Shown here in pieces: positions 17,052-55,799 of a stretch of DNA of 64,000 nucleotides. The stretch is from Mytilus californianus (taxonomy: Eukaryota): contig NW_026262701.1 in assembly GCF_021869535.1 (NCBI RefSeq), positions 102,796,001 through 102,860,000 on the forward strand, read 5' to 3'. The notes under the pieces were generated by a model that made no database searches, was not told where the DNA came from, and saw nothing but the letters and a program-made list of their open reading frames with translations. Made by a program: the position numbers and the translations under genes. How positions within the stretch are numbered: the stretch's first letter is position 1; the number at the start of each line of letters is the position of its first letter.

Positions 17052-20000
17052 ATGACAACAGCAGATGTCCAGTTTGAAGCATCAGATGAGTCCTCAGAAA
17101 ATGAATTATTAGAACGTAGTTTATCTGTATGGCATGGCTGGGATGTCAAAGATGAATCATCAATACCTCTAGATCTTCATACAGCCTCTAGTATAGGCCA
17201 TTATGACAGTGTTAAGTCCTTTATATCCAGGTAATCTCAATACCTCTAGATCTTCATACAGCCTCTAGTAAAGGCCATTTTGACAGTGTGAAGTCAATCC
17301 CGATACCTCTAGATCTTCATACAGCCTCTAGTAAAGGCCATTATGAGAGTATTAAGTCAATCTCAATACCTCTATATCTTCATACAGCCTCTAGTATAGT
17401 CCATCATGACAGTGTTAAGCCATTTATATCCAGATAATCTCAATACCTCTAAATCCTCATACAGCCTCTTAGTATAGGCCATTATGACAGTGTTAAGTTG
17501 TTTATATCCAGGTAATTTCAATACCCTGGTACCTCTAGATCTTCATACAGCCTCTAGTAAAGGCTATTATGACAATGTGAAGTCATTTATATTCAGGTAA
17601 TCTCAATACCTCTATATCTTCATACGCCTCTTGTATAGGCCATTCTGACAGTGTTAAGTTGTTTATATTGAGGTAATTTCAATACCTCTAGATTTTCATA
17701 CAGCCTCTAGTGTAGGCCATTATGACAATGTTAAGTCGTTTATATCCAGGTAATTTCAATACCTCTAGATTTACATACAACCTCTATTATAGGTCATTAT
17801 AACAGTGTTAAGTCGTTTATATCCAGGTAATCTCAATACCTCTAGATCTTCATAGATATAACCATTTTGTGTTTGTTTTTGCATAAACTATAGTATGGTA
17901 GATAGATAGAAACTGTAAAAAGCTAAAATTATCAACTGGACACAAACTACAAATCAATCAAACATGCCGGAAATCATCAGTCTACTCCTTACAGGAGTTA
18001 TTGCCCTTGAAAGATGATATTACATATTTTGGTGTTTTTTCTTGAAACTATTTGAAACATTCTCATTGCGTTGTATCAATTTTATGCAAAATTGGCAGGT
18101 GAGCGATATAGGATCCTTGGACCTTCTAGTTTCATTTTTTGTTAACACCAATAAATCATAAAATCTGGCATAAGATTTAGTGTATTTTTAGCTCTCCTGG
18201 CCCAAAAGGCCAAGTATGCTTTTCTCATCACTTATTGTTCTTTGTCGGCATCCGTTAACTTTTACAAAAATCTTCTCTTCTGAAACTACTGGGCTAATTG
18301 GAACCAGAATTTGCCACAATCAACATTTGGGGTATCTAGTTTAAAAAATGTGTCTGATGACCCTGCCTGCCAACCAACATGGCCAAAAGGGCTAAACATA
18401 GGGGTAAAATGCAATGTTTGGCTATTATCTTGAAAACCATTAGAAATAAAGAAAATTTGACATGGCAAAAATGTTCAGAATGATGAGATCTACCTAATGT
18501 TTATTGACATCAAAACTGTCAGACAACTTCTTAGAGGAGTTATTGCCCTTTAACAACAAATTTTACCAATTTTTTCATTTTTGCCCATTATCTTGAAAAT
18601 TATAATAGATAGATAGAAACTTTATATAACAAAAATGATCATCAAGACAAAATCTATAAATAAGATAAAACATGATCAAAATTGTTGGTTGACACTTTAT
18701 AGAAGTTTTTGCCCTTTAATGACGATTATTCCAGGTTTTTTTTGCAATTTTGCTTATTATCTTGAAAACTATAATAGAAAGTATGAAATTTTGAATACCA
18801 GAAATAATCAGCAAGACAAGATCCATAGATAAGTCAGTACGACCAAAGTCGTTGGTCAACTCCTTATTGAAGTCATTTCCCTTTTTTGATGTTTTTTTTT
18901 CCAATATTTCATTTTTGCCTATTATCTTGAAAACTATAATAGATCATGTAGATAGATAGAAACTTTAAAAAGCAAAAATGATCGGCAAGCCAAGGTCTAC
19001 ACATTAGCCATCATTGTCGAAATTTTCAGTCAACTCTTTGTTGGAGTTATTGCCTATAATTTTTACCATTTTGTTTGTTTTTTTTGCCTTTTAAATTGAA
19101 AATTATAATAGATAAATAGAAACTTTAAAAAAGAAAAAAATTATCAGCAGGATAATTTCTACAAATACATCAATATGACTGAAATTGTGAGTTAACTCTT
19201 AATACTGTTATTCCCTTATAAAGATAATTTTTTACAAAAAAGTGGAAATTGTTGAAGATGCAGGCGAGTCTTTAATTTTTTACATCAGTATAACTTGGGA
19301 AATTACATATATATAAATATTAATGATCATTATCTCATATTGATTTGGGCTGCAATATATTCATTTGTATATATGTATGAGTTAAATAGGATGGGAAAAG
19401 TCAGACATACAAATTACATATATCTAAATTTGTTTTATCTTCATTAAGCATGATTAGAAATGCTTAAAGTCAAATGTTTGAAAAGCCAAAGATGTATTGT
19501 ACTTATACTTTGGGGGGTTAAAGTCAAAAGGGGCTTGAATGGAATTTTCTATGGTCAGCAAGAGTTTTATTCTTTGATTTTTGAAACTACAGAATTATCC
19601 ACTAATGGATAAGATAATCTAGATTAAGACCAAAGTACTGTTTTGTAATGAGGGACAGTGTAATATTTTTTGTTCACTTTACATTTACAGAAAGGTTGAT
19701 TTAGACAAGAAGAATAGAGGAGGATGGACACCTTTAATGTATGCATGTTACATTGGGCATGACAATATAGTGAACCTTCTACTAGAAGCCTCTGTTGGTG
19801 TCAATGAACAAAACAATAAAGGACAGACTCCACTCATGTTAGCTGCTAGCTGTGGAAATGAAAGTGTTGCTTACTTTGTTTACCAGGTAACATTAAAATT
19901 AAGATTTGGTAAATTTGGTAAATAAATGCTTCAGAATACATGTGTATAAAAGAATATGTGGGGTAAACCTCAATGACAGCAACCCAAAGACAAAAATATC

Positions 20001-23000
20001 CAAAAGACGTATGGACACGAGACAATGCACTGAAACAACAACATTTCTCATACATGCATTTGTAAATTAAAAAGTTATTGCAATGTTGTAACAGAATTTT
20101 CTTATCATTAAGAAAACGCAATATTTTTATGCCCCACCTAGGGGCATTATGTTTTTCGGTCTGTGCGTCCTTTCATCCGTTCGTCAGTCCGTCTGTCCCG
20201 CTTCAGGTTAAAGTTTTTGGTCAAGGCAATTTTTGATGAAGTTGAAGTCCAATCAACTTGAAACTTAGTACACATGTTCCCCTTTATATGATCTTTCTAA
20301 TTTTAATGCCAAATTAGAGTTTTGACCCCAATTTCACGGTCCATTGAACATAGAAAATGATAGTGCGAGTGGGGCATCTGTGAACTATGGACACATTCTT
20401 GTTTTACATTGTCCCCAGCATGGGCTTTTGCTGTGGGATATACCGTAAGGGTGTTGGTTATATGTACACAACACATTAATACTCAGAGACTGTTTGACAG
20501 AAACCTTGCATACTTGGTAGGAATATTTTCTTGATCATACTATACTGTTAGTTTGATTTGACCATTTTTACAGGAGTTTTGGGACTTTGATTTTTATACG
20601 ACCGCAAAAATTAAAAAAATTTTTGTCGTATATTGGTATCAAGTTGTCGTCGTCGTCGTCCGTCGTCGTCGTCAGCGTTGTCTGAAGACAGATGGTTTCC
20701 GGATAATAACTTTAGTATAAGTAAATAGAAATCAATAAAATTTTAACACAAGGTTTATAAACACTAAAGGAAGGTTGGGATTGATTTTGGGTGTTATGGT
20801 CCCAACTGTTTAGGAATTAGGGGCCAAAAAGGGGCCAAAATAAGCATTTTTGTAGTTTCCAGACAATAACTTGTGTTAAAGTGTATGAATCTCTCTGAAA
20901 TTATACCACAAGTTTCCATACTACAAAGGGATGGTTAGGATTGACTTTGGGGGGCTATGGCTCAAACCAATTAGTAATCAGGGGCAAAAAAAGGGGAAAA
21001 ACAAGGGTTTTTTCTGGTTAAAGGACAAATGAGACAATTTAAAAGCAGTGTAAGGGAGGTAATCCAAATCAATTAAAAGAACACTGTTTGATTACCTCCC
21101 TTACACTGCTTGTAAATTATGTATTAAGAAATGATGATTGTTTTGAGGTGTCAATTTATTTTTAGCAGTTACTATTAATTAATATTAATTTTAGCCATGA
21201 CTATGTATGTCATTTTATATTTTAAAACTTTTATGATGTATTTAAATGGGTAATTATGGTTGCAAACTCCATTAGAAATTTGAATTGAGATACTGACCAT
21301 ATCTTGAGGGAAAGTTTTTTTTTGGAGAATAAGGGAAAGGGGGGAGGTGAAAAAAATTGGAGGGGGGGGGGACAATTTTTCTCATTTCAGATTTCAGAAA
21401 TTAAAAGAAAATTTCTTCAAATATTTTTTTATGGGGGTTAATACTCAACAGCATAGTGTATTGCACAAAAGCAAAAAACCGGGGTAAAATTTTTTTTTTT
21501 TGGGGGTGGGGGGGGGGGGGGGTCAATTTGCAACAGCATAGTGTATTGCTCAAAAGCAAAAATTTGAATATAAATTCAAATCATATAACCAATTTGAAGT
21601 TCTTTGACTACAGTTATTCTGTGTCAGAAACCTATTATGTGTCAAAAATTTAGTTACAATCCAAATTCAGACCTGTATCAAGCGTGAATATTGTGTCCAT
21701 TTTGGCCCCAACTTTTCAGGGTTGGACATCTGCGTTCGTATCCAGCTGTGCTCAGCGAAGCAATTTATTTTTTACTATCCTACCACAATGACACCTTGTG
21801 AAAGCGGCTCCCCTGACACTGTTTGACAGAAAGCTCTCATACTTGGTAGAATTGATTGAGATCATGTGTTATTCACCATATTGTACTGTTCTTATGATTC
21901 CACAATTTAATGGGAGAAATGGGACTTTGCCTATTTTTAAGGCTTTTGTACCATAATGACTCCATAATATATCCACATATAGGGGCCTCGGTGGCCGAGT
22001 GGTCTAAGTAGTTACTACTGTAATCACTAGCCAGTCAACACTGAGGTTGTGAGTTCGAATCCCGCACGGGGCAGGTGCACTCGACTCCAATCTTAATTGA
22101 CTAGGATTGTCAGTTTTCCTATCGAAGGTCTGTGGTTTTCTCCGGGCATTCCGGCTTCCTCCACCAATAAAAACTGGCCGCCATGAAATTGCCCAAAAGC
22201 GTTGCTTAAAAGTGGCTTTAAAATACAAAAAAAAAATTAAAAAAAAAAATATATCCACATAATATTATTCCTTTTTTACACAGAGGCAGGGGACATTTTA
22301 CTATCGCACAGCAATCTTCTCTAGTAATTAGTAACAACTTAGTTTTTTAAATTTAATATTTTAGATGGTTTCCATATGAATTCACAATTATAAATTGTAT
22401 GCATTACCAGCAATTTCTGGCCATAAAAATACTTGAGAGAAAGTCAAATACTGTTAAACAATGGTATTGAAATCCTATTTTATTAATTGATAAGGTTAAG
22501 ATTTACAAATGAATTAGGAATTGAAATTGTTATTTATATGTTACAGCAAGGAGGCGACTTAGAAGCTAGAGACAGAAAAGGATGGACAGCCTTATTTCAT
22601 GCAACATATGCTGGACATCAGAATGTTGTGAAATTTCTTTTAGAACAAGGAGCTCATATCAATGCCGTGTAAGTGTAGGTTGTTACTTCTCCTAGAACAG
22701 GGAGCTCATATTAATGCTGTGTAAGTGTAGGCTGTAACTTCTCCTAGAACAAGGAGCTCATATCAATGCTGTGTAAGTGTAGGCTGTTACTTCTCCTAGA
22801 ACAAGGAGCTCATATCAATGCTGTGTAAGTGTAGGCTGTAACTTCTCCTAGAACAAGGAGCTCATACCAATGCTGTGTAAGTGTAGGTTGTTACTTCTTC
22901 TAGAACAAGGAGCTCATATCAATCCTATGTAAGTGTAGACTGTTACTTCTCCTAGAACAAGGAGCTCATATCAATCCTTTGTAAGTGTAGACTGTTACTT

Positions 23001-26000
23001 CTAGAACAAGGAGCTCATATCAATGCTGTGTATGTGTAGGCTGTTACTTCTCCTAGAACAAGGAGCTCATATCAATGCTGTGTAAGTGTAGGCTGTTACC
23101 TGTCCTAGAATAAGGAGCTCATGTCAATGCTGTATAAGTGTAGGCTGTTACTTCTCCTAGAACAAGGAGCTTTTGTCAATGCTGTTTAAGTGTAGGCTGT
23201 TACATCTCCTAGAACAAGGAACTCATATCAATGCTGTGTAAGTGTAGGCTGTTACTTCTCCTAGAACGAGGAGCTCATATCAATGCTTTGTAAGTGTAGG
23301 TTGTTACTTCTCCTAGAACAAGGAGCTCATATCAATGCTGTGTAAGTATGGGCTGTTACTTCTCCTAGAACAAGCAGCTCATGTCAATTCTGTGTAAGTG
23401 TAGGCTGTTACTACTCTAAAAACAAGGAGCTCATATCAATGCTGTGTATGTGTAGGCTGTTACTGCTCCTAGAACAAGGAGCTCATGTCAATTCTGTGTA
23501 AGTGTAGGCTGTTACTTTTCCTAGAACAAGGAGCTCATGTCAATGCTGTATAAGTGTAGGCTGTTACTTCTCCTAGAACAAGGAGCTCTTGTCAATGCTG
23601 TGTAAGTGTAGGCTGTTACATATCCTGGAACAAGGAGCTCATATCAATGCTGTGTAAGTGTAGGCTGTTACTTCTCCTAGAACGAGGAGCTCATATCAAT
23701 GCTTTGTAAGTGTAGGTTGTTACTTCTCCTAGAACAAGGAGCTCATATCAATGCTGTGTAAGTATGGGCTGTTACTTTTCCTAGAACTAGGAGCTCATGT
23801 CAATCCTATGTAAGTGTAGACTGTTACTTCTCCTTGAACAAGGAGCTCATGTCAATTCTGTGTAAGTGTAGGCTGTTACTTCTCCTAGAACAAGCAGCTC
23901 ATGCCAATGCTATGTAAGTGTTGGTTGCTACTTCTCCTAGAATGAGGAGCTCATGCCAATGCTGTGTAAGTGTAGGCTGTTACTTCTCCTAGAACGAGGA
24001 GCTCATATCAATGCTTTGTAAGTGTAGGTTGTTACTTCTCCTAGAACAAGGAGCTCATATCAATGCTGTGTAAGTATGGGCTGTTACTTTTCCTAGAACT
24101 AGGAGCTCATGTCAATCCTATGTAAGTGTAGACTGTTACTTCTCCTTGAACAAGGAGCTCATGTCAATTCTGTGTAAGTGTAGGCTGTTACTTCTCCTAG
24201 AACAAGCAGCTCATGCCAATGCTATGTAAGTGTTGGTTGCTACTTCTCCTAGAACGAGGAGCTCATGCCAATGCTTTGTAAGTGTAGGTTGTTACTTCTC
24301 CTAGAACAAGGAGCTCATATCAATGCTGTGTAAGTGTATGTTGTTACTTCTCCTAGAACAAGGAGCTCATATCAATGCTGTGTAAGTGTATGTTGTTACT
24401 TCTCCTAGAACAAGGTGCTCATATCAATGCTGTGTAAGTGTATGTTGTTACTTCTCCTAGAACAAGGAGCTCATATCAATGCTGTGTAAGTGTAGGTTGT
24501 TACTTCTCTTAGAACAAGGAGCTCATATCAATGCTGTGTAAGTGTATGTTGTTACTACTCTAAGAACAAGGAGCTCATACCAATGCTGCCTTGGCTGTTC
24601 TCTATTTTGTCCAAAAACTATGTGCAAAATAGCAACTTTTGGTGTGCTTATGACATCATAAGTGAAACCTTTGCTCTAAAGTGTCTATATTATATTACTC
24701 TATTCATTCACTTACACAATTAACATAATTTTGAAAGTATTGAATAATTTTACTATTTTTGCAATTTCTGATGTCAAAAATGGCTTTTAAGCATCATACC
24801 TCCTCCTTTTGCAAAAGCTTCATATATTCCTTATCTTATTTGTTTCTTTACAGAGAACCTATTCATGGATTAACTCCCTTTATGGAGGCTGCAGCTGAAG
24901 GTCATGAAAAGATTGTACAGTTATTTCTCCAACATGTATGTTAGACAGTTAATTACTGCAGATAGGAACACTAATTTGTAAAAGGTTGCATAAACTGGAC
25001 TAACAGAATTATTATAAGCTCTGCTCAAATTCATTGAGAACATAATGTTTAAACCTTGTCCATCTCTATGTCACAAAATTGGTATTCATTTATCTTCAAT
25101 TCTCCATGACTAATTTGTTTAAAATTTTGAAATGCTGTTAGGAAGGAATGAACACAGATTGAGTGTGAATATGACAAATTTCACAAATGTAGTTTCATCA
25201 AAACAATAATTTCCATTGAAAATGGACATATTTCTGGTAAATTTCCAATCTTGACATAGTTCTTGTTCTTATATATTTTCACAACCCTCTCAAAATCTTG
25301 GATCTGCACTTGGTAACAATTATATAGGTCAGGTACTCTTTTCACCAAAAATCTTACGTTTGTAAGTTATACTGAAAAGTGCATGACATACTAGAATTTT
25401 ACTTAAGTAATTTTGTGTAAAAATAGCCACAGGTGTACAAAATGGTATTTTATCTTCCTATAAAAACTAAAATTTATGAAAACAAGTGTACTGACAATTC
25501 TTTTTAGGCATTAATCAATGCTTAGAATAGTCATTAAGGACAGGAATACTTACAATCAAATATACATGAACATTATAACCTTTTTTATGGCTCTGCTTCA
25601 AACACCTTTGGATAATTAATTTCTTGCAGTATAAATTTTACTTCAATATGTTTCAGAGAGCACATATAAATGCCAAGTCCTATAAAAATGAAACAGCGAG
25701 ATCATTAGCACTGGTATATAACCATGTAGCAATCGTCAACTTGATAGATAATGCTCTGCGTCCTGGAGTTTCATTACGTTCAGAGCCAGGTAGGTAGATT
25801 AGACGATGTGTCTTAGAGTTTCTATACGTTCAGAGCCAGGTAACTAAATAAGGCTATGTGTCTTGGAGTTACATTTAGATTAGTGCAAGAAAGGTAGAAA
25901 AAGCTGTGTCCTGGTGTTTCACTTCGTTCAGAGACAGGAAGGTTGACAATGCTATGTCCTGGGGTTTCACTTTGTTCAGAGACAGGTAGGTAGACAATGC

Positions 26001-29000
26001 TATGTCCTGGGGTTTCACTTCGTTCAGAGACAGGAAGGTTGACAATGTTATGTCCTGGGGTTTCACTTTGTTCAGAGACAGGTAGGTAGACAATGCTATG
26101 TCCTGGGGTTTCACTTCGTTCAGAGACAGGTAGGTAGACAATGCTATGTCCTGGGGTTTCACTTCGTTCAGAGACAGGTAGGTAGACAATGCTATGTCCT
26201 GGGGTTTCACTTCATTCAGAGACAGGTAGGTAGACAATGCTATGTCCTGGGGTTTCACTTCGTTCAGAGACGGGAAGGTTGACAATGTTATGTCCTGGGG
26301 TTTCACTTTGTTCAGAGACAGGAAGGTAGACAACGTTATGTCCAGGGGTTTCACTTTGTTCAGAGACAGGTAGGTAGACAATGCTATGTCCTTTTGATTT
26401 CACGTCATTCAGAGACTGGTAGTTAGACAATGTTATGTCCTGGGATTTCACTTCATTCAGAGACTGGTAGTTAGACAATGCTATGTCCTGGGATATCACT
26501 TCATTAAGAGACTGGTAGTTAGACAATGCTATGTCCTGGGATATCACTTCGTTCAGAGACTGGTAGGTAGACAATGCTATGTCCTGGAATATCAATATGT
26601 TCACAGACTGGTAGGTAGACAATGCTATGTCCTGGAGTTTCATTAGGTTTAGAGCCAGGTAGGTTTTTCTTTGTTGCCTGAAATTATTTTTCAACTCCAT
26701 TTTGGTTTCTTGTTCTTTTTCTTTTTCTGTTTAAAGAACACAATGTGCAATTTTTTGGAACATGATGTAATTATTTTATTAAGTTTCCCAAACGAAGTTT
26801 GGGAAGACTTATTGTTTTTGCTCAGTTCTTATTATTATTATTATTCTTCTTCTTCTTCTTCTTCTTCTTCTTCTTCTTCTTCTTCCGCCGCTTTTAAATT
26901 TGAACTTGTCCGCACCCGTTCTCCAAAACCGCATGTCAGATTAACTTAGGGTTTCACAATATGTTAGACTAACATGTCTAGTGGTGCAATCAGGGTTTTG
27001 TTTGTGCAATTGGGTTTATAAAGGGGTACTTTGAGGGGCAAAAAGAAAAGAGGGTTTTACTATAGAACCCTATGGGATTTTATTTTTTAAAATTTTCAAA
27101 TGATTATAAATTGAAAACCGTTTGTGATAGACGCAATCTTTTTAATTGAAAATGTTCTAAATGATAAAGCCCATTAAATGAAATACAGGGTTAGTCCCCA
27201 GGGGTCACCCCCACCCCCTGCCATTTAAGAAAGTTCTAATACCTTGTAAGTGGTCAAGATCCCCACCCCTAAACCATATATATTTTGGTTTGTTATGCTA
27301 AGATGGTTTGAATGATATTCAGGGTTAGTCCCCAGGGGTCACCCCGACCCCCTGCCATTTGAGAAAGTTCTAATATCTTGTAAATGGTCGAGATCCCCAC
27401 CCCTAAACCATATATATTCTGGTTTGTCATGACAAAGCACATCAAATGAAATACAGGGTTAGTCCCCAGGGGTCACCCCCACCCCCTGCCATTTAAGAAA
27501 GTTCTAATACCTTGTAAGTGGTCAAGATCCCCACCCCTAAACCATATATATTCTGGTTTGTCATGCTAAGATGGTTTGAACTATATACAGGGTTAGTCCC
27601 CAGGGGTCATCCCGACCCCCTGCCATTTGAGAAAGTTCTAATATCTTGTAAATGGTCGAGATCCCCACCCCTAAACCATATATATTCTGGTTTGTCATGA
27701 TAAAGCACTTCAAATGAAATACAGGGTTAGTCCCCAGGGGTCACCCCCACCCCCTGCCATTTGAGAAAGTTCTTATATCTTCTAAGTGGTCAAGATCCCC
27801 ACCCCTAAACCATATATATTCTGGTTTGTCATGCTAAGATGGTTTGAATGATATACAGGGTTAGTCCCCAGGGGTCATCCCGACCCCCTGCCATTTGAGA
27901 AAGTTCTAATATCTTGTAAATGGTCGAGATCCCCACCCCTAAACCATATATATTCTGGTTTGTCATGATAAAGCACATCAAATGAAATACAGGGTTAGTC
28001 CCCAGGGGTCACCCCCACCCCCTGCCATTTGAGAAAGTTCTAATATCTTGTAAATGGTTGAGATCTCCACCCCTAAACCATATATATTCCTATTTGTCAT
28101 GTCTCGAACATTTGAATGACGTATACGGTCAGTCCCCAGGGCCCCACCCCCAATGTTCTAATATCTTGTAAATGGTTGAGATCCCCACCCCTAAACCATA
28201 TATATTCTGGTTTGTCATGCCAAGATGATTTGAATGATATACAAGGTTAGTCCCCAGGCATCACTAATGCATATAACTTTACTGGACCAAACCAATTTTC
28301 ACTGGAAGTTGCCCAATGTCAGGCGACCCTGGGAATTATGAATTATGGGAGCTTCGTTTGGGAGACTTCGTAACAGCATCCTGTTACATTCATTTCTTGT
28401 TTGAAAACATTTTGAAAGAAAAATGAAAATTAAGAAAAGCTTGAAAACGGGGTTCAAAATATAGAAATAAAAACACCATAGAAATATTGGTGAGAACTGC
28501 AACCAAAGAACAAGATTTGCCATTCAGAAAGTAGCCATTTTCTGAATATTCTGTTTTAATCTGCCTGGGTCAAATAGAAAAGATGAGACTTGGGCATTGG
28601 CATAGTCTACAAAAAAGCACAAATGGTTAAGCTCAGTCAATTCCTAAATCTAGCATGTCCGATATCATTGCACAGAGGGTTTTTTTTTTTTTTTAATTTC
28701 TATTTATAAATGACCCAATTGGCCTATCATCATACAGTCTATGAAATTTGTGTTTTTTCTGAGTTTTACTACAAAACAGGGTTAGACATATCTCTTTTAA
28801 CTGTTCTACTGAATTAAATTTCTTATTAGAATGTATAAGTTGTAAAATTCATAATATTTTTGTTAAAATATGGAACAGACTTTTAACTAAATAGTATTTT
28901 TCAGGTTTGGATGGAGATTTAAGTTCATCAGATGACAATTTGCCACAGAAGAGAAGACACCAATCAAGAAGGTCTAATAATAAAGGAGGTCCAAGTATTA

Positions 29001-32000
29001 GAGATGGACCAGAAGCAATAGCTAGACTTATAGACAGATCTCGTAATCCTCCAACTAGTACTGGTGGTAGGTACAATTATAGTTTCTGCCATTGTAATAT
29101 ACTGATAGGTCTATTATTGAAAAAAGGGTTAGATACTTGTAGTAGTCCATAGTGTACATGAAGATAGGACTGTAAATTCTCAAAATAATATAACAGAAGT
29201 CTGGTTATTTTCATGTTTTATTTATTTTTTTACACTCCAAGTGATAATAAGTATTCATTTTTTTTTTTAAAGAATTTGGATAAATATATTCAAATCTAAT
29301 ATTTTATTGTCATTTGAACTTTGTTTTATGTTTTGATTTTAGATTTTTACTGACTTCAGCAGGGAATAAGACTAACATTTTCCAACTAGGGGCCCAACCT
29401 GCCACAATGTGAAAATTAACATAACACTATGGGCATTTTAATAAAAAATTTAGGGGCCCAACCCAAATTTTAGTAGCATTGGCTACTGGGCCCCTGCTAA
29501 TCTTTTTCCCTGTTCAGTAGGACTTAAGATTAAGATATGGGTTTTAAGAGTGGTGATATTATGACTTATATTGGCACAGAAGTAAGCATCACCGGGTATT
29601 GTTTCTCAAGTAATTTAATTTTGATGAAAGACTATATGGCTTATTATTGATTTCAACTTGAAATTCATTATAGATACCTGTGTACCAAAAGGTTATGTTA
29701 GTTTTCCTCAGCCTACAGAAGAAACAACACCACAGTTATCATACAGAGATGTAACTTCACCTATCAACATGCAAGATTATGCTCTAGATAGTTCTGGTGG
29801 TAGAGGTAAGATTCATATAATGTTTTTATGAAAGCAGGATTAACTTCTATTAACATGCAAGATTATGCTCTAGATAGTTCTGGTGGTAGAGGTAAGATTC
29901 ATATAATGTTTTTATGAAAGCAGGATTAACTTCTATTAACATGCAAGATTATGCTCTAGATAGTTCTGGTGGTAGAGGTTAGATTCATATAATGTTTTTA
30001 TGAAAGCAGGATTAACTTCTATTAACATGCAAGATTATGCTCTAGATAGTTCTGGTGGTAGAGGTAAGATTCATATAATGTTTTTATGAAAGCAGGATTA
30101 ACTTCACCTATTAACATGCAAGATTATGCTCTAGATAGTTCTGGTGGTAGAGGTAAGATTCATATAATGTTTTTATGAAAGCAGGATTAACTTCACCTAT
30201 TAACATGCAAGATTATGCTCTAGATAGTTCTGGTGGTAGAGGTAAGATTCATATAATGTTTTTATGAAAGCAGGATTAACTTCTATTAACATGCAAGATT
30301 ATGCTCTAGATAGTTCTGGTGGTAGAGGTTAGATTCATATAATGTTTTTATGAAAGCAGGATTAACTTCTATTAACATGCAAGATTATGCTCTAGATAGT
30401 TCTGGTGGTAGAGGTAAGATTCATATAATGTTTTTATGAAAGCAGGATTAACTTCACCTATTAACATGCAAGATTATGCTCTAGATAGTTCTGGTGGTAG
30501 AGGTAAGATTCATATAATGTTTTTATGAAAGCAGGATTAACTTCTCCTATTAACATGCAAGATTATGCTCTAGATAGTTCTGGTAGTAGAGGTAAGATTC
30601 ATATAATGTTTTTATGAAAGCAGGATTAACTTCTCCTATTAACATGCAAGATTATGCTCTAGATAGTTCTGGTGGTAGAGGTAAGATTCATATAATGTGT
30701 TTATGAAAGCAGGATTAACTTCTCCTATTAACATGCAAGATTATGCTCTAGATAGTTCTGGTGGTAGAGGTAAGATTCATATAATGTTTTTATGAAAGCA
30801 GGATTAACTTCTATTAACATGCAAGATTATGCTCTAGATAGTTCTGGTGGTAGAGGTAAGATTCATATAATGTTTTTATGAAAGCAGGATTAACTTCTAT
30901 TAACATGCAAGATTATGCTCTAGATAGTTCTGGTGGTAGAGGTAAGATTCATATAATGTTTTTATGAAAGCAGGATTAACTTCTATCAACATGCAAGATT
31001 ATGCTCTGGATAGTTCTGGTGGTAGAGGTAAGATTCATATAATGTTTTTATGAAAGCAGGATTAACTTCTATCAACATGCAAGATTATGCTCTGGATAGT
31101 TCTGGTGGTAGAGGATAGGTGGATGTTAAACTGTTTTCTTGTGAGCTAACACAACAGGCATGTGTTTCACCCATTATCATGACTGGAGTATGATAATATG
31201 ATATGAATATAAATCCAGCTTTGTACTAGACCGAAACAGTATTAAATTCAGTGATCAGGATGGCATAACTTGTCTATAAAGTTGCAGATCCAGGATTTTA
31301 GGCCAAGGGGTGTGACCATAATATTGTAGTAGAGCAGAACGAGGCAAACAAATTTTATAGGTTTTTTCAAACATTTTTTTTATGATCTTAAGGTGAATAT
31401 ACTGCTGATATACCAACAGACGTACACTTTCTTTGTAAAATTCTGATGAATTGGATGTTACAGATTCATTTAAAATCAAGGTAACAGAAAAATTCTATAT
31501 TTAAAGTGCATCAATGAAATTTTAATTTTCCAGATTCTTGTGATAATGATCCAGATGATGATGGAAATGCGTTCTCAAAGACTGGTGCTCTAACCATAAA
31601 GAGCAGCTCTGGTTCCTCTGGTGGACTCATGTCAGCATTAGGATTAAGTCGGGACAATAGTGTTGACAGTGACGACTATCAGCCTCACAGCAGTATATCA
31701 TCACATGATGGTAGTATAGGGGGTGCTATGGGGAATCTGTCATTAGGTGGAAGCACTGGCAGTTTAAATGGAAGTGCTCTATCACCAGCTTCAAGCATTA
31801 ATTTTGATCTTCAACAGAGTAAAGATGTCAGAACTGCAAATGTACCTCAAGATAACAATGCATATAAAATGACACCTAGTGATATTCTAGCAAATCAGGG
31901 GAAGACAACTCTGGAAAACCGTGGCAATGTTAAGCCTAGGGATATTGGTATAAACTACACCAATCAGAATGTTGTAAACAATGGTGCTACTATTGATGAT

Positions 32001-35000
32001 TATAATAAGAAAGGATTTCCTAACATAGGTGCAGATTTCGGTGCTCAACTTGGGCAGTTATTTCCACAGAATCCTGCTGCCAGGACAGACCAACAATTCT
32101 TCAAGCAAGGGGAGGTAAGTATAATTATGGCACTTCCCAAAATACCTGTACCAGTCAAATTACAATTCTGTGTAGCCATTTAAATTGGTATATTAGCATA
32201 GAAAATAGATATTTAATCAAATTTAAATGGCAACATTGAATGTCTAAATATTGTTTTAACAAAAAATGTACAGTGCTCAAATATATAAACATATAAAATA
32301 TATCAAGCCTCGAATAACCTTAATAGTTTTCTTACTTAACGAGAAAACTATTCCCGCTTACATTTATAAAAAAATACCCGTGCTATTATAATAACAACTG
32401 CTATTACATCACATTGCGGTAAAATACCAACCGATGATATTTATTTTAAAATTAAATAATAAGAAACCTGTTTAATATTACCGGTCACCAATCAGATAAC
32501 TTGTTGGTGACACACAAACACATGATACTTTGTTTGTAAACAAACTTTAAAAACTATAAACATAAAGCATGTGTTCATCTAACGTTAATAAATACATATA
32601 TACACCAGACTCACCCACAGATAAGTCTGATCAAAACAATAACTTTCATGTATTTGGTAATTTCAGGGTAATAACACAGGATATCCAGAAGATTTACATA
32701 CTTTATTAGAACAGTTGAGTCTGACTAAATATTTACCTGTATTTGAAGAACAAGAAATAAATCTGGAAGTGTTCCTGTCTCTTACTGATAATGATCTCAA
32801 AGAAATTGGTATACAGTAAGTATAAACAATGGAAGACATGTTACCTGTCAGGTGCACTTGAACATTGACATTACCAGCAATACATAACAAAAAAGAGAAG
32901 TATAAACAAGGGAAGACATGTTACCTGTCAGGTGCACTTGAACATTGATATTAACAGCAATACATAACAAAAAAGAGTAGAAGTATAAACAAAGGAAGAC
33001 ATGTTACCTATCAGGTGCACTTGAACATTGACATAACCAGCAATACATAACAAAAAAGAGAAGTATAAACAAGGGAAGACATGTTACCTGTCAGGTGCAC
33101 TTTAACATTGATATTAACAGCAATACATTACAAAAAAGAGTAGAAGTATATACAAAGGAAGACATGTTACCTGCCAGGTGCACTTGAACATTGATATTAC
33201 CAGCAATACGTAACAAAAAAGAGTAGAAGTATAAACAAAGGAAGACATGTTACCTGTCAGGTGCACTTGAACATTGACATTACCAGCAATACATAACAAA
33301 AAAGAGAAGTATAAACCAAGGAAAACATGTTACCTGTTAACAAAAAAGAGAAGAAGCATAATACAGTTTATTAAGAGGTAGTACTTATTTTTGTTGCATT
33401 AAAGGTCTTTCACACTTAAAGATATAAAAGAGTCATTTACTTGAATGAGTTAATTAGACCTTTGTCAGTGTTTCAATGGATTTTTTCCTGAGTTATTATA
33501 GAGAGAGGTATTCTTGCTGATATATGTATATGGCAAAGATTTTTTTGTAATAATACTTCATATTTTTGTTGAATTTACATTTTGTTGAATGTAATTGAAA
33601 ATTCTTATCATATGCATAGATCTCTAAATAAAGCCAGATGATTGTACCTGGTGCTTCTTAGTTTTGGGTTAAAGGTATTTGTCACTGACTTTCAATGGAA
33701 TGTATCCTGAGTCACTATACAGAAAGGTATGGAAAAATGCTGATGCATGACAAAAACTTTTGGATAAACATGCAATAATTTTTTTTAAACCCTTATCATA
33801 TACATCCCTGACACCTTGTCTTTTAAGATGTTTTCAAGGATTCAATGTCCTGAGAAAAATAGAAAATCAACAATTACATCAGTGAAAGTCAAGTCATAAA
33901 AAAATCTTAGTAGAAATAATACTTCTAGTTAGTATAACTAACAATCGTTTTAAATATAATAAGATTTATGTGTTGAAAGAGTTGTTGCTTAAGTACTGTA
34001 AAATCTGCATATTTACTGAACCAAATAAACAGCTAAATATTAGATTTTTAGACTCCTTTATTATATTTTTTGATAATGATCCACTGATGTCAGTTATGAA
34101 TTCAATTACTCTTTAAAGCTTTAAAAAAAAACTATATAGGTTGAACCCATTTTTTATACGACCGCAAAAAAATTTTGTGGTCGTATATTGGTATGACGTT
34201 GGCGTCGTCGTCGTCGTCGTCGTCGTCGTCTGGCGTCGTCCGAAGACACATTGGTTTTCGCACTCTAACTTTAGTTTAAGTGAATGGATCTTTTTGAAAT
34301 TTGACCATAAGGTTAAATACCACAAAAGGAAGGTTGGGATTGATTTTGGGGGTTATGGTACCAACAGTTAAGGAATTAGGGGCCAAAAAGGGGCCAAAAA
34401 TAAGCATTTTCTAGTTTCCAGACAATAACTGTGGAACGGTGTATGGATCTCTCTGAAATTATACTACAAGTTTCCATACCACAAAGGGATGGTTAGGATT
34501 TGCTTTGGGGGATTATGGCTCAAACCGTTTAGGAATTAGAGGCAAAAAAGGGGGAAAAACAAGGTTGTCCTGGTTAATGGACAAATACTTTAATACAAAA
34601 CATAATTTAAAGCAGTGTAAGGGAGATAAATCAAATACATCATTGAAATTATCTCCCTTACACTGCTTTTAAATTATGTATAAAGTAATGGTTAATGAAC
34701 AATAAAGATAATTTAAAACAGTGTAAGGGAGGTAATCCAAATACAACGTTTTGGTTACTTCCCTTACACTGCTTTTAAATTATGTTTAAAGAAATGCATA
34801 TTTATAAAGGAAGACCAGTAAAAATATCTGCAAATGTTGCATCTTTTTTTTTACAAAAAAATCCATATGAAAGATTTGACACTATATTTTTAATTCTATT
34901 ATAAAATAGATTAAGTTAGCACTATGGTAAATTTAAATGGGTAATTATGGTTGCCAACTCCATTGGAAATTTGAATTGAGATTATGACCATATCTTGAGG

Positions 35001-38000
35001 GAAAGAATTTTTTGGGGAAAAAAAGGGGGGGGGGGATAAAAAGAAATTGTGGGGGGTCAATTTTTTCTCATTTCAGATTTCAGAAATTAAAAAGAATTAT
35101 TCTTCAAATATTATTTTTTTTTCAAATTTCAAATATTGAAAAATTTCAAGAAGTAATCTTTAATTGCACAGTATGGCACATTAGATTTGTAAAATCTTTG
35201 ATCACATTTATTTATTTGTTATGCCGAATCTAACAGTGTATTTAGATTTTTAATTTTGGGTCCAGTTTTCAAATTGGTCTACATTAAGGTCCAAAGGGTC
35301 CAAAATTAAACTTTGTTTGATTTTAGCAAAAATTGAATATATGAGGTTCTTTGATATGCTGAATCTAAACATGTATTTAGATTTTTGATTTTTGGCCCAG
35401 TTTTCAAGTTGGTCCAAATTGGGGTCCAAAATTAAACTTTGTTTGATTTCAACAAAAATTGAATATATGGGGTTCTTTGATATGCTGAATCTAACCATGT
35501 ATTTAGATTTTTTATTTGTGGACCCCATTATCAAATTGGTTCATATTGAGGTCAAAAGGGTCCAAAATTAAACTTTGTTTGATTTCATCTAAAATTGAAT
35601 TATTGGGGTTCTTTGATATTCCAAATCTAACAGTGTATTTAGATTTTTAATTTTGGGTCCTGTTTTTTAAATTGGTCTACATTAAGATCCAAAGGGTCCA
35701 AAATTAAACTAAGTTTGATTTTAACAAAAATTGAATTTTTGGGGTTCTTTGATATGCTGAATCTAAACATGTGTTTAGATTTTTTATTATGGGCCCAGTT
35801 TTCAAGTTGGTCCAAGATAGGGTCCAGTATTTAAACTTTGTTTGATTTCAACAAAAATTGAATATATGAGGTTCTTTGATATGCTGAATCTAAACATGTA
35901 TTTAGATTTTTGATTATGGGCCCAGTTTTCAAGTTGGTCCAAATTGGGGTCCAAAATTAACTTTGTTTGATTTCATCAAAAATTGAATTATTGGGGTTCT
36001 TTGATATGCCAAATCTAACCGTGTTTTTAGATTTTTAATTTGGGTCCCGTTTTTTAACTTGGTCTTCATTGAGGTCCAAAGGGTCCAAAACTAAACTTAG
36101 TTTGATTTTAGCAAAAATTGAATTCTTGGGGTTCTTTGATATGCTGAATCTAAACATGTGTTTAGATTTTTGATTATGGGCCCAGTTTTCAAGTTTGTCC
36201 AAGTTGGGGTCCAAAATTAAACCTATTTTTGATTTCAACAAAAATTGAATATATGGGGTTCTTTGATATGCTGAATCTAACCATGAATTTAGATTTTTTA
36301 TTTGTGGGCCCGCTATCAAATTGGTTCATATTGAGGTCAAAAGGGTCCAAAATTAAACTTTGTTTGATTTCATCAAAAATTGAATTATTGGGGTTCTTTG
36401 ATATTCCAAATCTAACCGTGTATTTAGATTTTGAATTTTAAGTCCCGTTTTTTAAATTGGTCTACATTAAGGTCCAAAGGGTCCAAAATTAAACTTAGTT
36501 TGATTTTAGCAAAAATTGAATTCTTGGGGTTCTTTGATATGCTGAATCTAAACATGTGTTTAGATTTTTGATTATGGGCCCAGTTTTCAAGTTGGTCCAA
36601 GATAGGGTCCAGTATTTAAATTTTGTTTGATTTCAACAAAAAATGAATATATGAGGTTCTTTGATATGCTGAATCTAAACATGTATTTAGATTTTTGATT
36701 ATGGGCCCAGTTTTCAAGTTGGTCCAAATTGGGGTCCAAAATTAACTTTGTTTGATTTCAACAAAAATTGAATATATGAGGTTCTTTGATATGCTGAATC
36801 TAACCATGTATTTAGATTTTTTATTTGTGGGCCCCGCTATCAAATTGGTTCATATTGAGGTCAAAAGGGAACAAAATTAAACTTTGTTTGATTTCATCAA
36901 AAATTGAATTATTGGGGTTCTTTGATATGCCAAATCTAACCGTGTTTTTAGATTTTTAATTTGGGTCCCGTTTTTTAAATTGGTCTTCATTGAGGTCCAA
37001 AGGGTCCAAAATTAAACTTAGTTTGATTTTAGCAAAAATTGAATTCTTGGGGTTCTTTGATATGCTGAATCTAAACATGTGTTTAGATTTTTGATTATGG
37101 GCCCACTTTTCAAGTTTGTCCAAGTTGGGGTCCAAAATTAAACTTTTTTTGATTTCAACAAAAATTGAATATATGGGGTTCTTTGATATGCTGAATCTAA
37201 CCATGAATTTAGATTTTTTATTTGTGAGCCCGCTATCAAATTGGTTCATATTGAGGTCAAAAGGGTCCAAAATTAAACTTTGTTTGATTTCATCAAAAAT
37301 TGAATTATTGGGGTTCTTTGATATTCCAAATCTAACCGTGTATTTAGATTTTTAATTTTAAGTCCCGTTTTTTAAATTGGTCTACATTAAGGTCCAAAGG
37401 GTCCAAAATTAAACTTAGTTTGATTTTAGCAAAAATTGAATTCTTGGGGTTCTTTGATATGCTGAATCTAAACATGTGTTTAGATTTTTGATTATGGGCC
37501 CAGTTTTCAAGTTTGTCCAAGTTGGGGTCCAAAATTAAACTGTTTGATTTTAACAAAAATTTAATATATGCGGTTCTTTGATATGCTGAATCTAACCATG
37601 TATTTTGATTTTGGACATTGGACCATAATAGGTAAATTAAAAAAATTCAAGTTCTTAGACTACATTCTTTCTGTGTCAGAAACCTATGCTGTGTCAAATA
37701 TTTAATAACAATCCAAATTCAGAGCTGTATCAAGCTTGAATGTTGTGTCCATACTTGCCCCAACTGTTCAGGGTTCGACCTCTGCGGTCGTATCAAGCTG
37801 CGCCCCAGCGAAGCATTTTATTCATCTGGATTTTCAACCCAGTATGTATTACATTGACAGGTTATTTGGACCAAGAAAAAAGTTGACCAATGCAATAGCC
37901 AGATGGCACAGTCAAGCACCTATGGCTATAAGTAACCAGTTAGAACAGGCCTATGCAGATAGGCTGGAGGGACAATTGCAAGAAATGGCTGTGCAGTTAC

Positions 38001-41000
38001 ATAAGGTATTACTATTTGAATTGTTTCACATTTGTCATTCATGTCGGGGCATTTTATAGCTGACTATAGGTATAGGGTTTTCTCATTGTTTTGAATAAAA
38101 TCCAATGATTGCTCCTATTTATTGAAAGGAGCTCAAAGAACATTCTTTGTTGATTTCAAATTGTCTCAAAAGACAGTATCCAGAGCAAAAGGACATGGTT
38201 CACTTTAGGCCAAATATGACCTTGAAATTCCACTTTATCATAAAATATCAAAATGGACATAATTTGGTTCTTAAATGGATCTATTTCAAAAGCCTTACTA
38301 CAAGTTTAAACAAATCTCTTCTATAGAGTACATTCTGTGCTTCAAAGGCAGCATATTTTGGATAAATTGTCAAAAAAAGATGATTTTGTGCATTTTTGGA
38401 CCTACTTTCTTGATCAGGGGTGGCGGCCAAAGTAAATTACGTTAAAACTGTTTAGAATTACTGATAATTTGACCAAAACTGACATTACAACACAAATAGT
38501 GCATACTTTAGCGGTAATTTCTTTGTCATTTTTTAATGTGATGTGCCAAAAAGGAGTTATTTTGTATTAATAGTTATATCACAAGTATTTCTATGTGAAA
38601 TTTGTAGTATTTTGGTCTATTTAAAAAGAAACATGAAATTGTTAGGGCTAATTTTAACCCTTCATGAACTTACTCCTTTGGAAAATATTTTTTTTCTACA
38701 TTTTTGTCGAGCCTGCGACTTTTGTTCCAGAAAGCACGACATAGGGATAGTGATCCGGCTACGGCGGCGGCGGCGTTAGCTAACTTTTTAAAAGCTTTAT
38801 ATTTTAGAAGCTAGAAGACCTGGATGCTTCATACTTTGTATATAGATGCCTTATGTTACGAAGTTTCCGTCTGTCATATGTCCATTGTCCTTGATCTCAT
38901 TTTCATAGTTCAGTGACCACTTGAAAAAAAAGTCAACATTTTTTGTGATGTTAATTTCTTTCTTATTATGAGTAATAGGATAACTATATTTAGTATGTGC
39001 ATACCTTGCAAGGTCCTCATGCCTGTCAGACAATTTTCATTTGACATCGACCTCATTTCATGGATCAGTGAACAAGGTTAAGTTTTCGTGGTCAAGTCCA
39101 TATATCAGATACTATAAGCAGTAGGTCTACTATATTTGATATTTGGAATGATTGTAAGGTGTAGATGTCCAACTGGTAGGTGTCATCTGACCTTGACCTC
39201 ATTTTCATGGTTCAGTGGTCAAAGTTAAGTTTTTGAGTTTTGGTCTTTTTTTCTAATACTATATGCAATAGGTCAACTATATTTGGTGTATGGAATTATT
39301 TTATGATGTACATGTCAGTCTCGCAGGTTTTATTTGACCTTGACCTCATTTTCACGGTTCATTTCTCAGTGTTAAGTTTTTATGTTTTGGTCTGTTTTTC
39401 TTCAACTATAAGCAGTAGATCAACTGTATTTGTTGTATGGAAGGATTGTAAGGTGTATATGTCTGTCTGGCAGGTATCATCTGACCTCAACCTCATTTTC
39501 ACGGTTCATTTCTCAGTGTTAAGTTTTTGTGTTTTGGTCTGTTTTTCTTAAACTATAAGCAATTGATCAACTGTATTTGTTGTATGGAAGGATTGTAAGG
39601 TGTATATGTCTGTCTGGCAAGTATCATCTGACCTTGACCTCATTTTCATGGTTCATTGGTCGATGTTAAGTTTTCATGGTTAAGTTTGTTTCTTAGATAC
39701 TATAAGCAATAGGTCAACTATATTTAATGCATAAATTAATTGTAAGGTGTACATGTCTGTCTGGCATGGTTCATCTGACCTTGACCTCATTTTCACGGTT
39801 CATTGGTCAATGTTAAGTTTTCTTGGTTAAGACTGTTTCTTAGAAACTATAAGCAATAGGTCAACTATGTTTGGTTTATTGGATGATTGTAAGGTGTACA
39901 TGTATTTCTCTATTGGTTTATCTGACCTTGACCTCATTTACTTGGATCATGTTAAGTTTATGTGTTACTTGCAGTAAAGCTTCATATTTAGGACTATCAA
40001 CATAAAATCAATGGTTAGTAAAGAAGGCGAGGCATTTCAGCGTGTGCACTCTTGTTTCAGTATTTTACTGGTAAATGGATTATGTTTTTTTCACAGTGAA
40101 TATTATAATACTGTCTATGGTTAAAGTTTTTCAGACAGCAATAACTTTGTCAAACCTTCATTGAATTTTGCAAAACTTTGACAGATGCTTCTTCATGATC
40201 AATGACAGTATCCAGAGCAAAATTTTGCAAACATTTTTTTCATTTTTCCATTTCACTGATAAAAGGTCTTAGTTTTTTTTGCAGTTAACATTTTGACACA
40301 GTTTGGGGTTAAAGTTTTTTAAACATCAGTAACTTCGAAGTTTATGAAACTTTGGCAGAAGCTTTGTTATGATTATGAGATTATGTCTGATGCTCAATTT
40401 TGAAAATATTTTTATTCCTTTTTCCATTTTTGACTAATAAATGGACTTTTTTTGCGGGGCCTTGGTGACCAAGTCATCTAAATTGTCCAACAATTACACC
40501 TCTAGCCTGTCAATACTGAGGTTATATGTTTAAACCATGCATGTGGCAGGTGCATTCGGCTCCAATCTTAATTTACTAGGATTGTCAGTTTTCCTGCCCA
40601 AGATGGATGATTCTCTTTGGCTTCCTCCACCAATAAAAACTGACCGCCACGAAATAGCTAACAGTGCTAAAAATGGCGTTAAACACCAATCAATTAATCA
40701 ATCAATATTTTTTTTTTGCAGTTGACATTCACATACAGTCTCAAATTTTTAGAACATCAATAACTTTGTAAAACCTTCAAGAATGTTATGAAACTTGAAC
40801 AAAAGCTTCTTCAAGATCAAGAAATAGCATCTGAAGAAGAAAGTTTGATTTTTGTAAAAACAATTATGTATTTTACTAATTAATGGACTTAAATTTTTGG
40901 CAGTCATCATTACACATTTATGCTGACAGCAGCAATATGAGTCTAGACACAGGGTTTGCAGAACCCTTTACAAATTTTTTCATCACATAAGCTATGAATT

Positions 41001-42515: not shown

Positions 42516-43275
42516 ATTTTTATGCCCCCGCCGTAGCGGAGGGGGTATTAAGTTTTACCCTTGTCCGTCTGTACGTACGTCAGTCTGTACGTCCCAAAAT
42601 TGGTTTCCGTTCTCTAACTTGAGTTTGCCTCAACCAAATGTTATGAACATATACACAATGCTTATTACCACAAAACACAGATCAAGTGTGAATTTTGGTG
42701 GCGTCACTTTAACCGTTCTAGAGTTATGCCTCTTTATAAATGGAAAAATTGCAAAATTTTTAGTTTCCGTTCTCTAACTTAAGTTTGCCTCAACCAAATG
42801 TTATGAAACTTATACACAATGCTTATTACCACAAAACACAGATCAGGTTTGAATTTTGGTGGCGTCACTTAACCTGTTCTAGAGTTATGCCCCTTTATAA
42901 TGGAAAAATTACTAAATTTTTAGTTTCTGTTCTCTAACTTAAGTTTGCCTCAACCAAATGTTATGAAACTTATACACAATGCTTATTATCACAAAATACA
43001 GATCAAGGGTAAATTTTGGTGGCGTCACTCAAACCTTTCTACAGTAATGCCCCTTTATAAATGGGAAAATTGCAAAACTTTTAGTTTCCGTTCTCTAACT
43101 TAAGTTTGCCCCAACCAAATGTTATGAAACTTATACACAATGCTTATTACCACAAAACACAGATCAAGTTCAAATTTGGGTAGCGTCACTTTTACCGTTC
43201 TTCAGTTATGTCCCTTTATAACTATATGATTTTAAAGCGGGGGCATCATCTGTGTCCACATGTGGACACAATCCA
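42516..43275 (+). mobile_element. HINE-like element with four 160-bp central repeats
   Basis: Start tttttatgcccccgccgtagcggaggggg; units at 42604, 42764, 42924, 43085; end gcgggggcatcatctgtgtcc..ggacaca. Confidence 0.8.
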
Positions 43276-46420: not shown

Positions 46421-47289
46421 ATATAACCTACATGCAATAAAACACTTAATAATTTTTTTGTTAATCATGTAATTAAATGCTCCAATTAGACCATGACATC
46501 TTTTTGTATTGTAACCTTGCCAGACTATAGTACACAGAATACACAAACAGAATATGTTTTTTGTATGATGCATTTTTAAACCAGTGTTCCTGTTAATGTG
46601 TTATTGTTTATTATGTAGAATGTTGAATAAAAAGATTAGTGAAAAAACAATTTTTGAAACCATTGTTTAATTTAATGCATTTTTACCAACTGAAACAGAA
46701 TTTAGGAACATATTACTAGTGGTAAGTTCCCTGTTCATGCTTGTGGCAGTATCACCTTCAGATCTTTTGACCATCCTCTCATATATTTTGTATTCTGTTT
46801 GATCATTATTTGGAAACTGATCAAAAAGGATTGATAGTCCATAAGACTTTCATAATGAAATTTTCAGGAAGTCATATGTACCAATAACATTTGGGAAAAT
46901 GTTTCAGCTCACCTGGCCCTATTAGGGAAAGGTAGAAAATTTAAACAGGAAAAATTATCAACAATACAAAAATTTATAATTATATTATTGTGAGGTGAGA
47001 TATTCATGCTCTTAGGAGCCTCTTGTTTTTAAAATACCTCAACAGATAATTTTATATTGAATATTTATAATACAATCACACTTTTTATATACAATATTCT
47101 AGAAGTTATTTTACAAATACTGAGAAAAATCCTATGCCATCCCCTCCCCATCTTTGCCAGAAGAACAGTTGTTACCTTACTTTGAGAGTAGGAGAGGTTT
47201 TTTCCATCCCCAGCTGACTCAAACAAAATTCGTATTTGTACTTCATTGTCAGGTACACAGCATTAAGGAGTGAGAGCAAAGACTGGTTG

Positions 47290-55420: not shown

Positions 55421-55799
55421 TCTCTTTCTAGCAGGTTCTATGTACTGCAAATCCTCTTGGGTAAGTAATCGTTGTCTTGCTTTTTTTTTGTTTTGTTAGT
55501 TGTCCTTTGGTTTTGGCTTGGTGCCAATCTGAATAGTCTAGCCTCTTTTCAACTGTTGTCTCGTCTAAATGAAGGCATGCTGTTTCATGGCATTGGCAGC
55601 ATCAACAATTTGTTAAAGTTTGTGGTTAATCAGCTTTAGATGCTCATTTTTTTTGAAGATTATTTGGACATGTCCCGTCAGTCATAGTCCATTGAAACTT
55701 TTGCGTAGTTTACATGTTAAAGTATTGTCATTTTGATTTCAGCATTTGCATTTTACTATCAAAATTACATACAGGCGAGACATCTCTCTATGTCATCAG

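Follow-up and report, generated by a model that had tools for sequence, protein, structure and literature searches.

The stretch analysed here, called the window below, is a 64,000-nucleotide (nt) segment of the Mytilus californianus genome (RefSeq assembly GCF_021869535.1, contig NW_026262701.1, positions 102,796,001 to 102,860,000 of the forward strand); positions are counted from its first letter unless another locus is named. The window contains an ANKS3-like gene, and five of the eleven introns of this gene (introns 1, 3, 5, 7 and 9) carry a tandem array located at their donor (5' splice site). The gene was modelled from open segments and splice signals, with the following coordinates.

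17052-42177 (+): ANKS3-like gene, 12 coding exons
17052-17230 (+): exon E1
19691-19886 (+): exon E2
22547-22668 (+): exon E3
24854-24935 (+): exon E4
25657-25789 (+): exon E5
28905-29066 (+): exon E6
29674-29805 (+): exon E7
31534-32114 (+): exon E8
32667-32815 (+): exon E9
37861-38005 (+): exon E10
41026-41198 (+): exon E11
41883-42177 (+): exon E12

Through comparison of the exon 8 translation with protein representatives and a homologue search, the gene was assigned to the mollusc ANKS3-like proteins. From the ATG at 17052, exons 1 to 9 give an unbroken frame of 578 residues, which holds ankyrin repeats and the start of a SAM domain, and Pfam revealed both Ank repeats and a SAM domain in the product. 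The window matches the annotated M. californianus ANKS3-like locus (L004) with 100% identity over 29,126 base pairs (bp). In tblastn the window was colinear with the ANKS3-like proteins of Mytilus edulis and M. californianus and with those of distant orthologues, and the aligned protein blocks always ended at the first donor of each array and restarted at the next exon. Because the orthologous proteins are colinear with the first donors, the ends of the array-bearing exons 1, 3, 5, 7 and 9 are fixed at 17230, 22668, 25789, 29805 and 32815.

The arrays were detected with Tandem Repeats Finder and their copies were then cut in register with the exon copy. Five arrays are found within 17.2-33.3 kb, with units of 63/77, 52, 48, 86 and 83 bp, 6-37 copies and 83-97% matches between copies.

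17161-17854 (+): array A at the intron 1 donor, unit of 77 bp with 63-bp variants, about 9 copies (Tandem Repeats Finder span 17233-17854, 83-88% matches)
22641-24588 (+): array B at the intron 3 donor, 52 bp x 37.5, 90% matches
25760-26664 (+): array C at the intron 5 donor, 48 bp x 18.8, 87% matches
29752-31114 (+): array D at the intron 7 donor, 86/89 bp x 15.5, 97% matches
32816-33337 (+): array E, abutting the intron 9 donor, 80/83 bp x 6.4, 91% matches

A first-pass annotation of this DNA, made from the letters by a model, had placed five arrays exactly at ANKS3 donors. Arrays A to D do span donors 1, 3, 5 and 7, each with a junction-spanning unit whose edge copy is the real exon end; array E abuts donor 9, its copies starting at intron position +1 to +3, and lacks such a unit. 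The first copy of array A is composed of 70 nt of the end of exon 1 and seven intron nt (GTAATCT), that of array B of the final 28 nt of exon 3 and 24 intron nt with the donor GTAAGT, and that of array C of the final 30 nt of exon 5 and 18 intron nt. In array D the first copy takes in the final 45-52 nt of exon 7 and about 41 intron nt (45+41 in register). The annotation had also read the first copy of these four arrays as the real exon end and donor, followed by decoy donors, and this held: 65 of the 75 decoy junction copies in A to D keep GT.

The units of the five arrays resemble one another only in chance matches of 7-8 nt, so they are unrelated, as had been claimed. No copy of any array unit was found outside its own array in the 64-kb window. 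The arrays are thus local products, not a dispersed element, and A to D derive from the exon end next to them. That the arrays might be assembly artefacts, or dispersed transposon-derived satellites lying in these introns by chance, is hardly credible. The strongest hint in that direction is that arrays of 134-169 bp units in the same introns recur and look like dispersed families; against it, the units in question copy the exon end beside them and have no match elsewhere in the window, their copies are diverged and not identical, and A, B, C and E are found at the same junctions in the independent assembly of Mytilus coruscus.

Tandem Repeats Finder also reported multi-unit periods of 153, 350 and 163-246 bp in the arrays, and array B holds a higher-order block of six units repeated twice, indicating growth by exchange of blocks of units. 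Rolling-circle amplification, one of the routes named in the first-pass annotation, finds no support here; such multi-unit blocks point to unequal exchange instead. In arrays C and D, the two outermost copies have states in common that are replaced in interior copies, and the final copy of array C is closer to the exon copy than the interior copies are.

For comparison, the exons were mapped in the ANKS3 loci of M. edulis, M. coruscus, Mytilus galloprovincialis (two assemblies) and Mytilus trossulus, and copies of each junction were counted in the adjoining intron with a 30-nt junction probe. A Logan contig of a close relative (L002) is too short to show any array. Within the genus, the amplified junctions are donors 1, 3, 5, 6, 7 (twice, with 86-bp and 35-bp units) and 9, and the acceptors of exons 2 and 9, distributed as follows.

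Donors 1, 3 and 9 (arrays A, B and E): M. californianus and M. coruscus, shared by descent
Donor 5 (array C): all five Mytilus species, degenerate arrays at the same donor
Donor 6: 94-bp unit in M. edulis and M. galloprovincialis, not in the window
Donor 7 (array D): confined to M. californianus; a 35-bp array of independent origin, whose units have other edges, lies at this donor in M. trossulus
Acceptor of exon 2: M. trossulus, 74-bp units composed of 58 intron nt and 16 exon nt, ten copies (9 extra)
Acceptor of exon 9: M. edulis and M. galloprovincialis, 83-bp units composed of 13 intron nt and 70 exon nt
L006 15672-27085: exon 9 acceptor array in intron 8 of the first M. galloprovincialis assembly, about 125 copies, more than 10 kb
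L007 14927-15779: the same array in the second M. galloprovincialis assembly, about 10 copies

Array A has no counterpart in M. edulis, M. galloprovincialis or M. trossulus. Array D is missing from M. coruscus, where intron 7 is 435 bp long. At donor 9, M. coruscus has a homologous 80-bp array and M. trossulus a separate 41-bp array with the same start. The array at donor 5 is degenerate and present in all five species, so array C is old. The claim that the process recurred is borne out by this distribution, with C in all five species, A, B and E shared with M. coruscus and D confined to M. californianus; the arrays arose independently and at different times, and arrays at different junctions and with different unit edges have come up again and again, both within Mytilus and in other invertebrates.

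None of the acceptor junctions of the ANKS3-like gene in the window is repeated, as tested with 30-nt junction probes against the adjoining intron. The earlier statement that no acceptor is involved is therefore true for M. californianus, but it fails beyond it, given the acceptor arrays of M. trossulus (exon 2) and of M. edulis and M. galloprovincialis (exon 9), and three more in amphioxus.

The copy-number comparison among related species, which the first-pass annotation had proposed, showed the arrays to be hypervariable. Donor 3 has 36 decoy copies in M. californianus versus 24 in M. coruscus, and donor 6 has 7 versus 4 copies in the two M. galloprovincialis assemblies. At the exon 9 acceptor there is one extra copy in M. 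edulis, and 123 versus 6 extra copies in the two M. galloprovincialis assemblies, whose intron 8 measures 15.1 kb in L006 and 4.8 kb in L007. Length instability between assemblies of one species is thus shown for the exon 9 acceptor and donor 6 of M. galloprovincialis; for the window's own arrays the differences are between species.

Besides the junction arrays, a unit of 25 bp is repeated about 330 times in intron 6 of M. trossulus (L008 9697-17250), giving a 7.5-kb array that starts 47 nt past the exon 6 donor. The source of this unit is single-copy intron sequence, of which M. californianus has one copy.

Junction arrays are also found in ANKS3 outside the genus. In the scallop Pecten maximus arrays lie over two donors. 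The abalone Haliotis rufescens has a junction-spanning array of its own at each of the four consecutive donors of exons 2-5 (L013 3570-7397; 34 bp x 29, 62 bp x 20, 31 bp x 3.7 and 127 bp x 3). Of the four junction arrays in the amphioxus Branchiostoma lanceolatum, three are at acceptors and one is at a donor. No junction arrays were found in ANKS3 of Mya arenaria and Saccostrea echinata. As a separate observation, a 19-bp x 145 array in H. rufescens begins 13 nt past the exon 10 donor.

The comparison of array starts with random placement was run on ANKS3 only (nine loci). When arrays were placed at random in the 25.1-kb span of the window's gene, 0.55-0.60 donor-anchored arrays were expected and five were seen. 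With all 11 arrays of the gene placed, the probability of this is about 1e-4, and with the five local arrays alone about 3e-8; these position statistics leave out the recognisable identity of the copies with the adjoining exon ends. Pooling the ANKS3 genes of six distant species, we found 14 junction-spanning arrays among 45 versus 3.4 expected (P about 5e-6), with exon ends at the non-Mytilus loci known only to a few bases. Overall, junction arrays are 4-8-fold above the expectation of uniform placement, and they have more copies than intron-internal arrays (median 5.6 versus 2.35, p = 0.006).

Two regularities were considered and dropped. The occupation of odd introns (1, 3, 5, 7 and 9) is a coincidence, as neighbouring donors bear arrays in M. 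edulis (5 and 6) and in Haliotis (2-5). An avoidance of phase-0 introns in Mytilus (donor arrays at none of four phase-0 introns versus six of seven introns of other phases; p about 0.015 in a post hoc hand calculation) was abandoned because donors 2 and 4 bear arrays in Haliotis, and in Mytilus the introns concerned are phase 0.

The position of the junction within the unit bears on how the arrays may begin. As a fraction of the unit, the exonic part takes values from 0 to 0.91, in agreement with a uniform distribution (Kolmogorov-Smirnov p = 0.71). Pausing or breakage right at the donor bound by U1 would place an edge of the unit at the junction. Since the junction can lie anywhere within the unit, a break fixed at the splice site is not supported. 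The first-pass annotation had suggested a mechanism acting exactly at U1-bound 5' splice sites, through pausing or R-loops followed by slippage or rolling-circle amplification. It could draw on the excess of donor arrays over acceptor arrays (about 19 versus 5 among the junction arrays listed), on the start of the donor 9 arrays at intron +1 to +3 in three Mytilus species, and on the 6 of 40 intron-internal arrays that start no more than 100 nt downstream of a donor. But acceptor junctions are amplified as well, and the edges of the units lie off the junction with the uniform spread just given, so we did not retain this mechanism and regard it as distinctly unlikely.

The decoy donors are mostly intact. 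GT is preserved in five of the six decoys of array A and in 33 of the 36 of array B, and the match of decoys to the U1 consensus is similar to that of the authentic site. Every usable (GT-bearing) decoy in A to D would, if spliced, lead to a stop codon within the inserted sequence; in array B this applies to all of the decoys. Variation at the decoy GT/AG positions is 3.7% versus 3.2% for other columns (p = 0.47). The decoy sites thus vary as other columns do, which argues against selection for individual decoys and equally against selection against them, and selection on decoy sites was rejected on this ground.

The annotated M. californianus ANKS3-like isoform X2/X3 (P0153, 636 amino acids) takes its residues 1-20 from a stretch of array B, and the rest equals P0156 from exon 4 onward.

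23699-23757 (+): N-terminus of isoform X2/X3 inside array B, ending at a decoy donor joined to exon 4 (L004 8648-8706)

This may be real use of a decoy donor by some transcripts, or else an error that the array caused in gene prediction. This isoform, together with the strong donors kept by most decoys, could be taken as a sign that the arrays have a function. Rows of U1-binding donors might shield long, AT-rich, transposon-laden introns from premature polyadenylation, or the arrays might act as splicing enhancers or give regulated isoforms, and the D units could be in-frame cassette exons of 54 nt; on a reading of the letters, the D unit has an AG acceptor that would give an open exon of this length. 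We think a function very improbable. Decoy GT/AG is no better conserved than the neighbouring columns, presence and absence are lineage-specific, and two assemblies of one species are 20-fold apart in copy number. A role for U1 is at odds with the acceptor arrays, and the orthologous proteins are without inserted repeats.

Another explanation is a pure selection filter, in which duplications arise uniformly along the gene, exon-internal ones are removed and those including a junction survive through use of the exon-proximal site, with no mutational bias. Several observations agree with it: the junction has no fixed place in the unit, as expected of random end points; decoy GT/AG and other columns evolve alike; use of a decoy leads to premature stops, so its cost is small; and choice of the first site has been shown in the human F7 gene. 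The first-pass annotation had likewise proposed that selection tolerates duplications in this register, and that much agrees with the data, as the first donor keeps the open reading frame and usable decoys run into stops. However, intron-internal duplications should be at least as harmless and offer a target 10-20 times larger, yet it is the junction arrays that exceed expectation by 4-8 times, and it is these that carry the more copies. The junction excess and the larger size of junction arrays indicate that tolerance alone is not enough, and we consider the filter by itself unlikely.

We therefore favour, as highly probable, that these arrays are splice-junction minisatellites of the kind called 'mirages' in amphioxus, produced by local duplication and unequal exchange and tolerated through use of the exon-proximal site, with a regional bias as the favoured addition. 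The first duplication may have come from slippage or from unequal exchange between short direct repeats. Growth and shrinkage would then proceed by unequal sister-chromatid or allelic exchange, by which interior copies would be homogenised and copies at the edges would stay nearer to the ancestral state. The spliceosome would take the exon-proximal site, that is the first donor (as in human F7 intron 7) or the last acceptor, and transcripts that use a decoy would carry a premature stop and probably be removed by nonsense-mediated decay. As for the regional bias, we might speculate that segments with a splice site are less stable or more prone to expand, and not that a break occurs exactly at the splice site.

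A stronger version is possible though doubtful: a process coupled to splicing or transcription may preferentially create or expand junction duplications in mussels, scallops, abalone and amphioxus, so that mirages would be the footprint of a distinct mutational pathway. If this were true, ANKS3 alone would record at least nine independent events in one genus.

Several points weigh against the mirage interpretation. The enrichment test covers one gene at nine loci with generous tolerances and includes Mytilus arrays that are partly shared by descent. The use of the first donor here is read from the colinearity of orthologues and from annotated proteins, and one annotated isoform, X2/X3, uses a decoy donor of array B. 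Array E is composed of intron sequence only, with no junction inside its unit and a weak GT at the start of its copies. Microhomology at the unit edges is modest, amounting to 4-7 nt in A, B and D, and is hard to make out in C. Finally, arrays B, C and D finish in a partial copy that stops -1, +6 and +1 nt off its own exon-intron junction (24586, 26664 and 31114); the layout is (exon end + intron start) x n followed by one further exon end, which simple tandem duplication does not predict. A 3' end at the junction was rejected as a general rule, because A, E and the arrays of other species do not fit it.

Contrary to the first-pass annotation, which knew no description of such a pattern, arrays of this kind have been reported before. 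In human, minisatellites whose first monomer lies across an exon-intron boundary are known in F7, IFI6 (6-16), CBS intron 13, LMNB2 and PDGFA intron 4 (PMC1557585, Borensztajn et al. 2006). The pseudo-donors of F7 intron 7 (37-bp unit) are functional yet silent, because the most upstream donor is chosen by 5'-to-3' scanning (PMC1557585). The mussel arrays resemble them in that identical or near-identical pseudo-donors stand in a row behind an authentic donor. They differ in that the human arrays are isolated, one per gene, and rare in the genome, and that splicing was tested there by experiment while in the mussel it is read from sequence.

The closest counterpart is found in amphioxus, where 'mirages' are minisatellite-like tandem duplications of exon-intron boundaries, 5' and 3' alike (PMC3087553, PMC3902484). 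The term is credited to work on Adh3 (PMC3087553), and the hosts are Adh3 and the globins BflGb6 and BflGb9 (PMC3087553), with troponin C and PGBD5 added later (PMC3902484). Splicing is undisturbed by them, their length is unstable, edge copies escape homogenisation, and the mechanism was called unclear (PMC3087553, Ebner et al.). The units measure tens of bp at the shortest and about 160 bp at the longest, and AG/GT is preserved in many copies. Interior copies evolve in concert, and the mRNA seems to be normal.

The mussel arrays share several of these features. They are composed of head-to-tail minisatellite units (48-86 bp, 6-37 copies) within a gene, and many, though not all, copies keep GT. 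Concerted evolution of the interior with escape of the edges is seen in C and D, and B has its repeated six-unit block. Both kinds of boundary are amplified in M. trossulus (exon 2 acceptor), in M. edulis and M. galloprovincialis (exon 9 acceptor) and in amphioxus ANKS3, but not in the window. The differences from the amphioxus mirages are a mollusc host, a high density, with 5 of the 11 introns of one gene involved, copy numbers of up to 37 (123 in a congener) and, in M. californianus, the restriction to donors. No published report of mirages or such arrays in Mytilus, bivalves or molluscs was found in the literature searched; papers on the mouse pseudoautosomal region and on earthworm metallothionein proved to have no bearing on it. 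Thus the kind is already known, and its occurrence in molluscs appears to be unreported.

A related process is intron gain by tandem duplication of a segment containing AGGT (the Rogers model), with vertebrate, potato and Drosophila cases (PMC3265369, PMC4974935, PMC2891723; the model is discussed in PMC3087553). There too the duplication yields extra donor and acceptor signals from exon-derived sequence, but no new intron was created in mussel ANKS3. Such intron gain was rejected here, because in scallop and abalone the orthologue is divided into exon blocks at the same positions of the protein (for amphioxus the agreement is only rough, positions not being compared). As the orthologue blocks break at matching positions, the introns predate the arrays.

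The locus may be of use in several respects. With 75 decoys beside five real donors it offers a natural test of 5' splice site choice outside mammals. The repeated, datable births of arrays at known junctions make an unusually clean system for the study of how minisatellites begin, including the preference for boundaries that the amphioxus work left open. The arrays can mislead gene prediction, as the N-terminus of a RefSeq isoform inside array B illustrates, and hypervariable arrays next to exons, with the 20-fold copy difference between assemblies noted above, could serve as markers. They may also be raw material for new exons or introns.

The window contains further repeats. Introns 1, 5, 9 and 10 hold arrays of longer units (134-169 bp), and so does the region downstream of the gene.

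18561-18943: array of 134-169 bp units
27161-28258: array of 134-169 bp units
35215-37612: array of 134-169 bp units
39036-39939: array of 134-169 bp units
42603-43221: array of 134-169 bp units

Since introns of other Mytilus ANKS3 loci also hold units of about this length, these look like dispersed satellite families. A scan with Rfam at gathering thresholds revealed no ribozyme or other RNA family in the window, and a hammerhead or retrozyme origin of these arrays was discarded on this result.

At 47285-55421 lies an 8.1-kb array of 84 copies of a 97-bp unit, with 94% matches and a strong GC skew of about +0.25. It was not accepted as a further junction array, as no exon adjoins either edge.

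Two coding features are located beyond the gene.

58722-59501 (+): open frame of 260 residues with a YLDD-like motif, no Pfam match
61704-62432 (-): exon encoding a von Willebrand factor type A domain (E = 2e-40)

The latter exon is on the minus strand, and therefore a neighbouring gene sits on the strand opposite to ANKS3.

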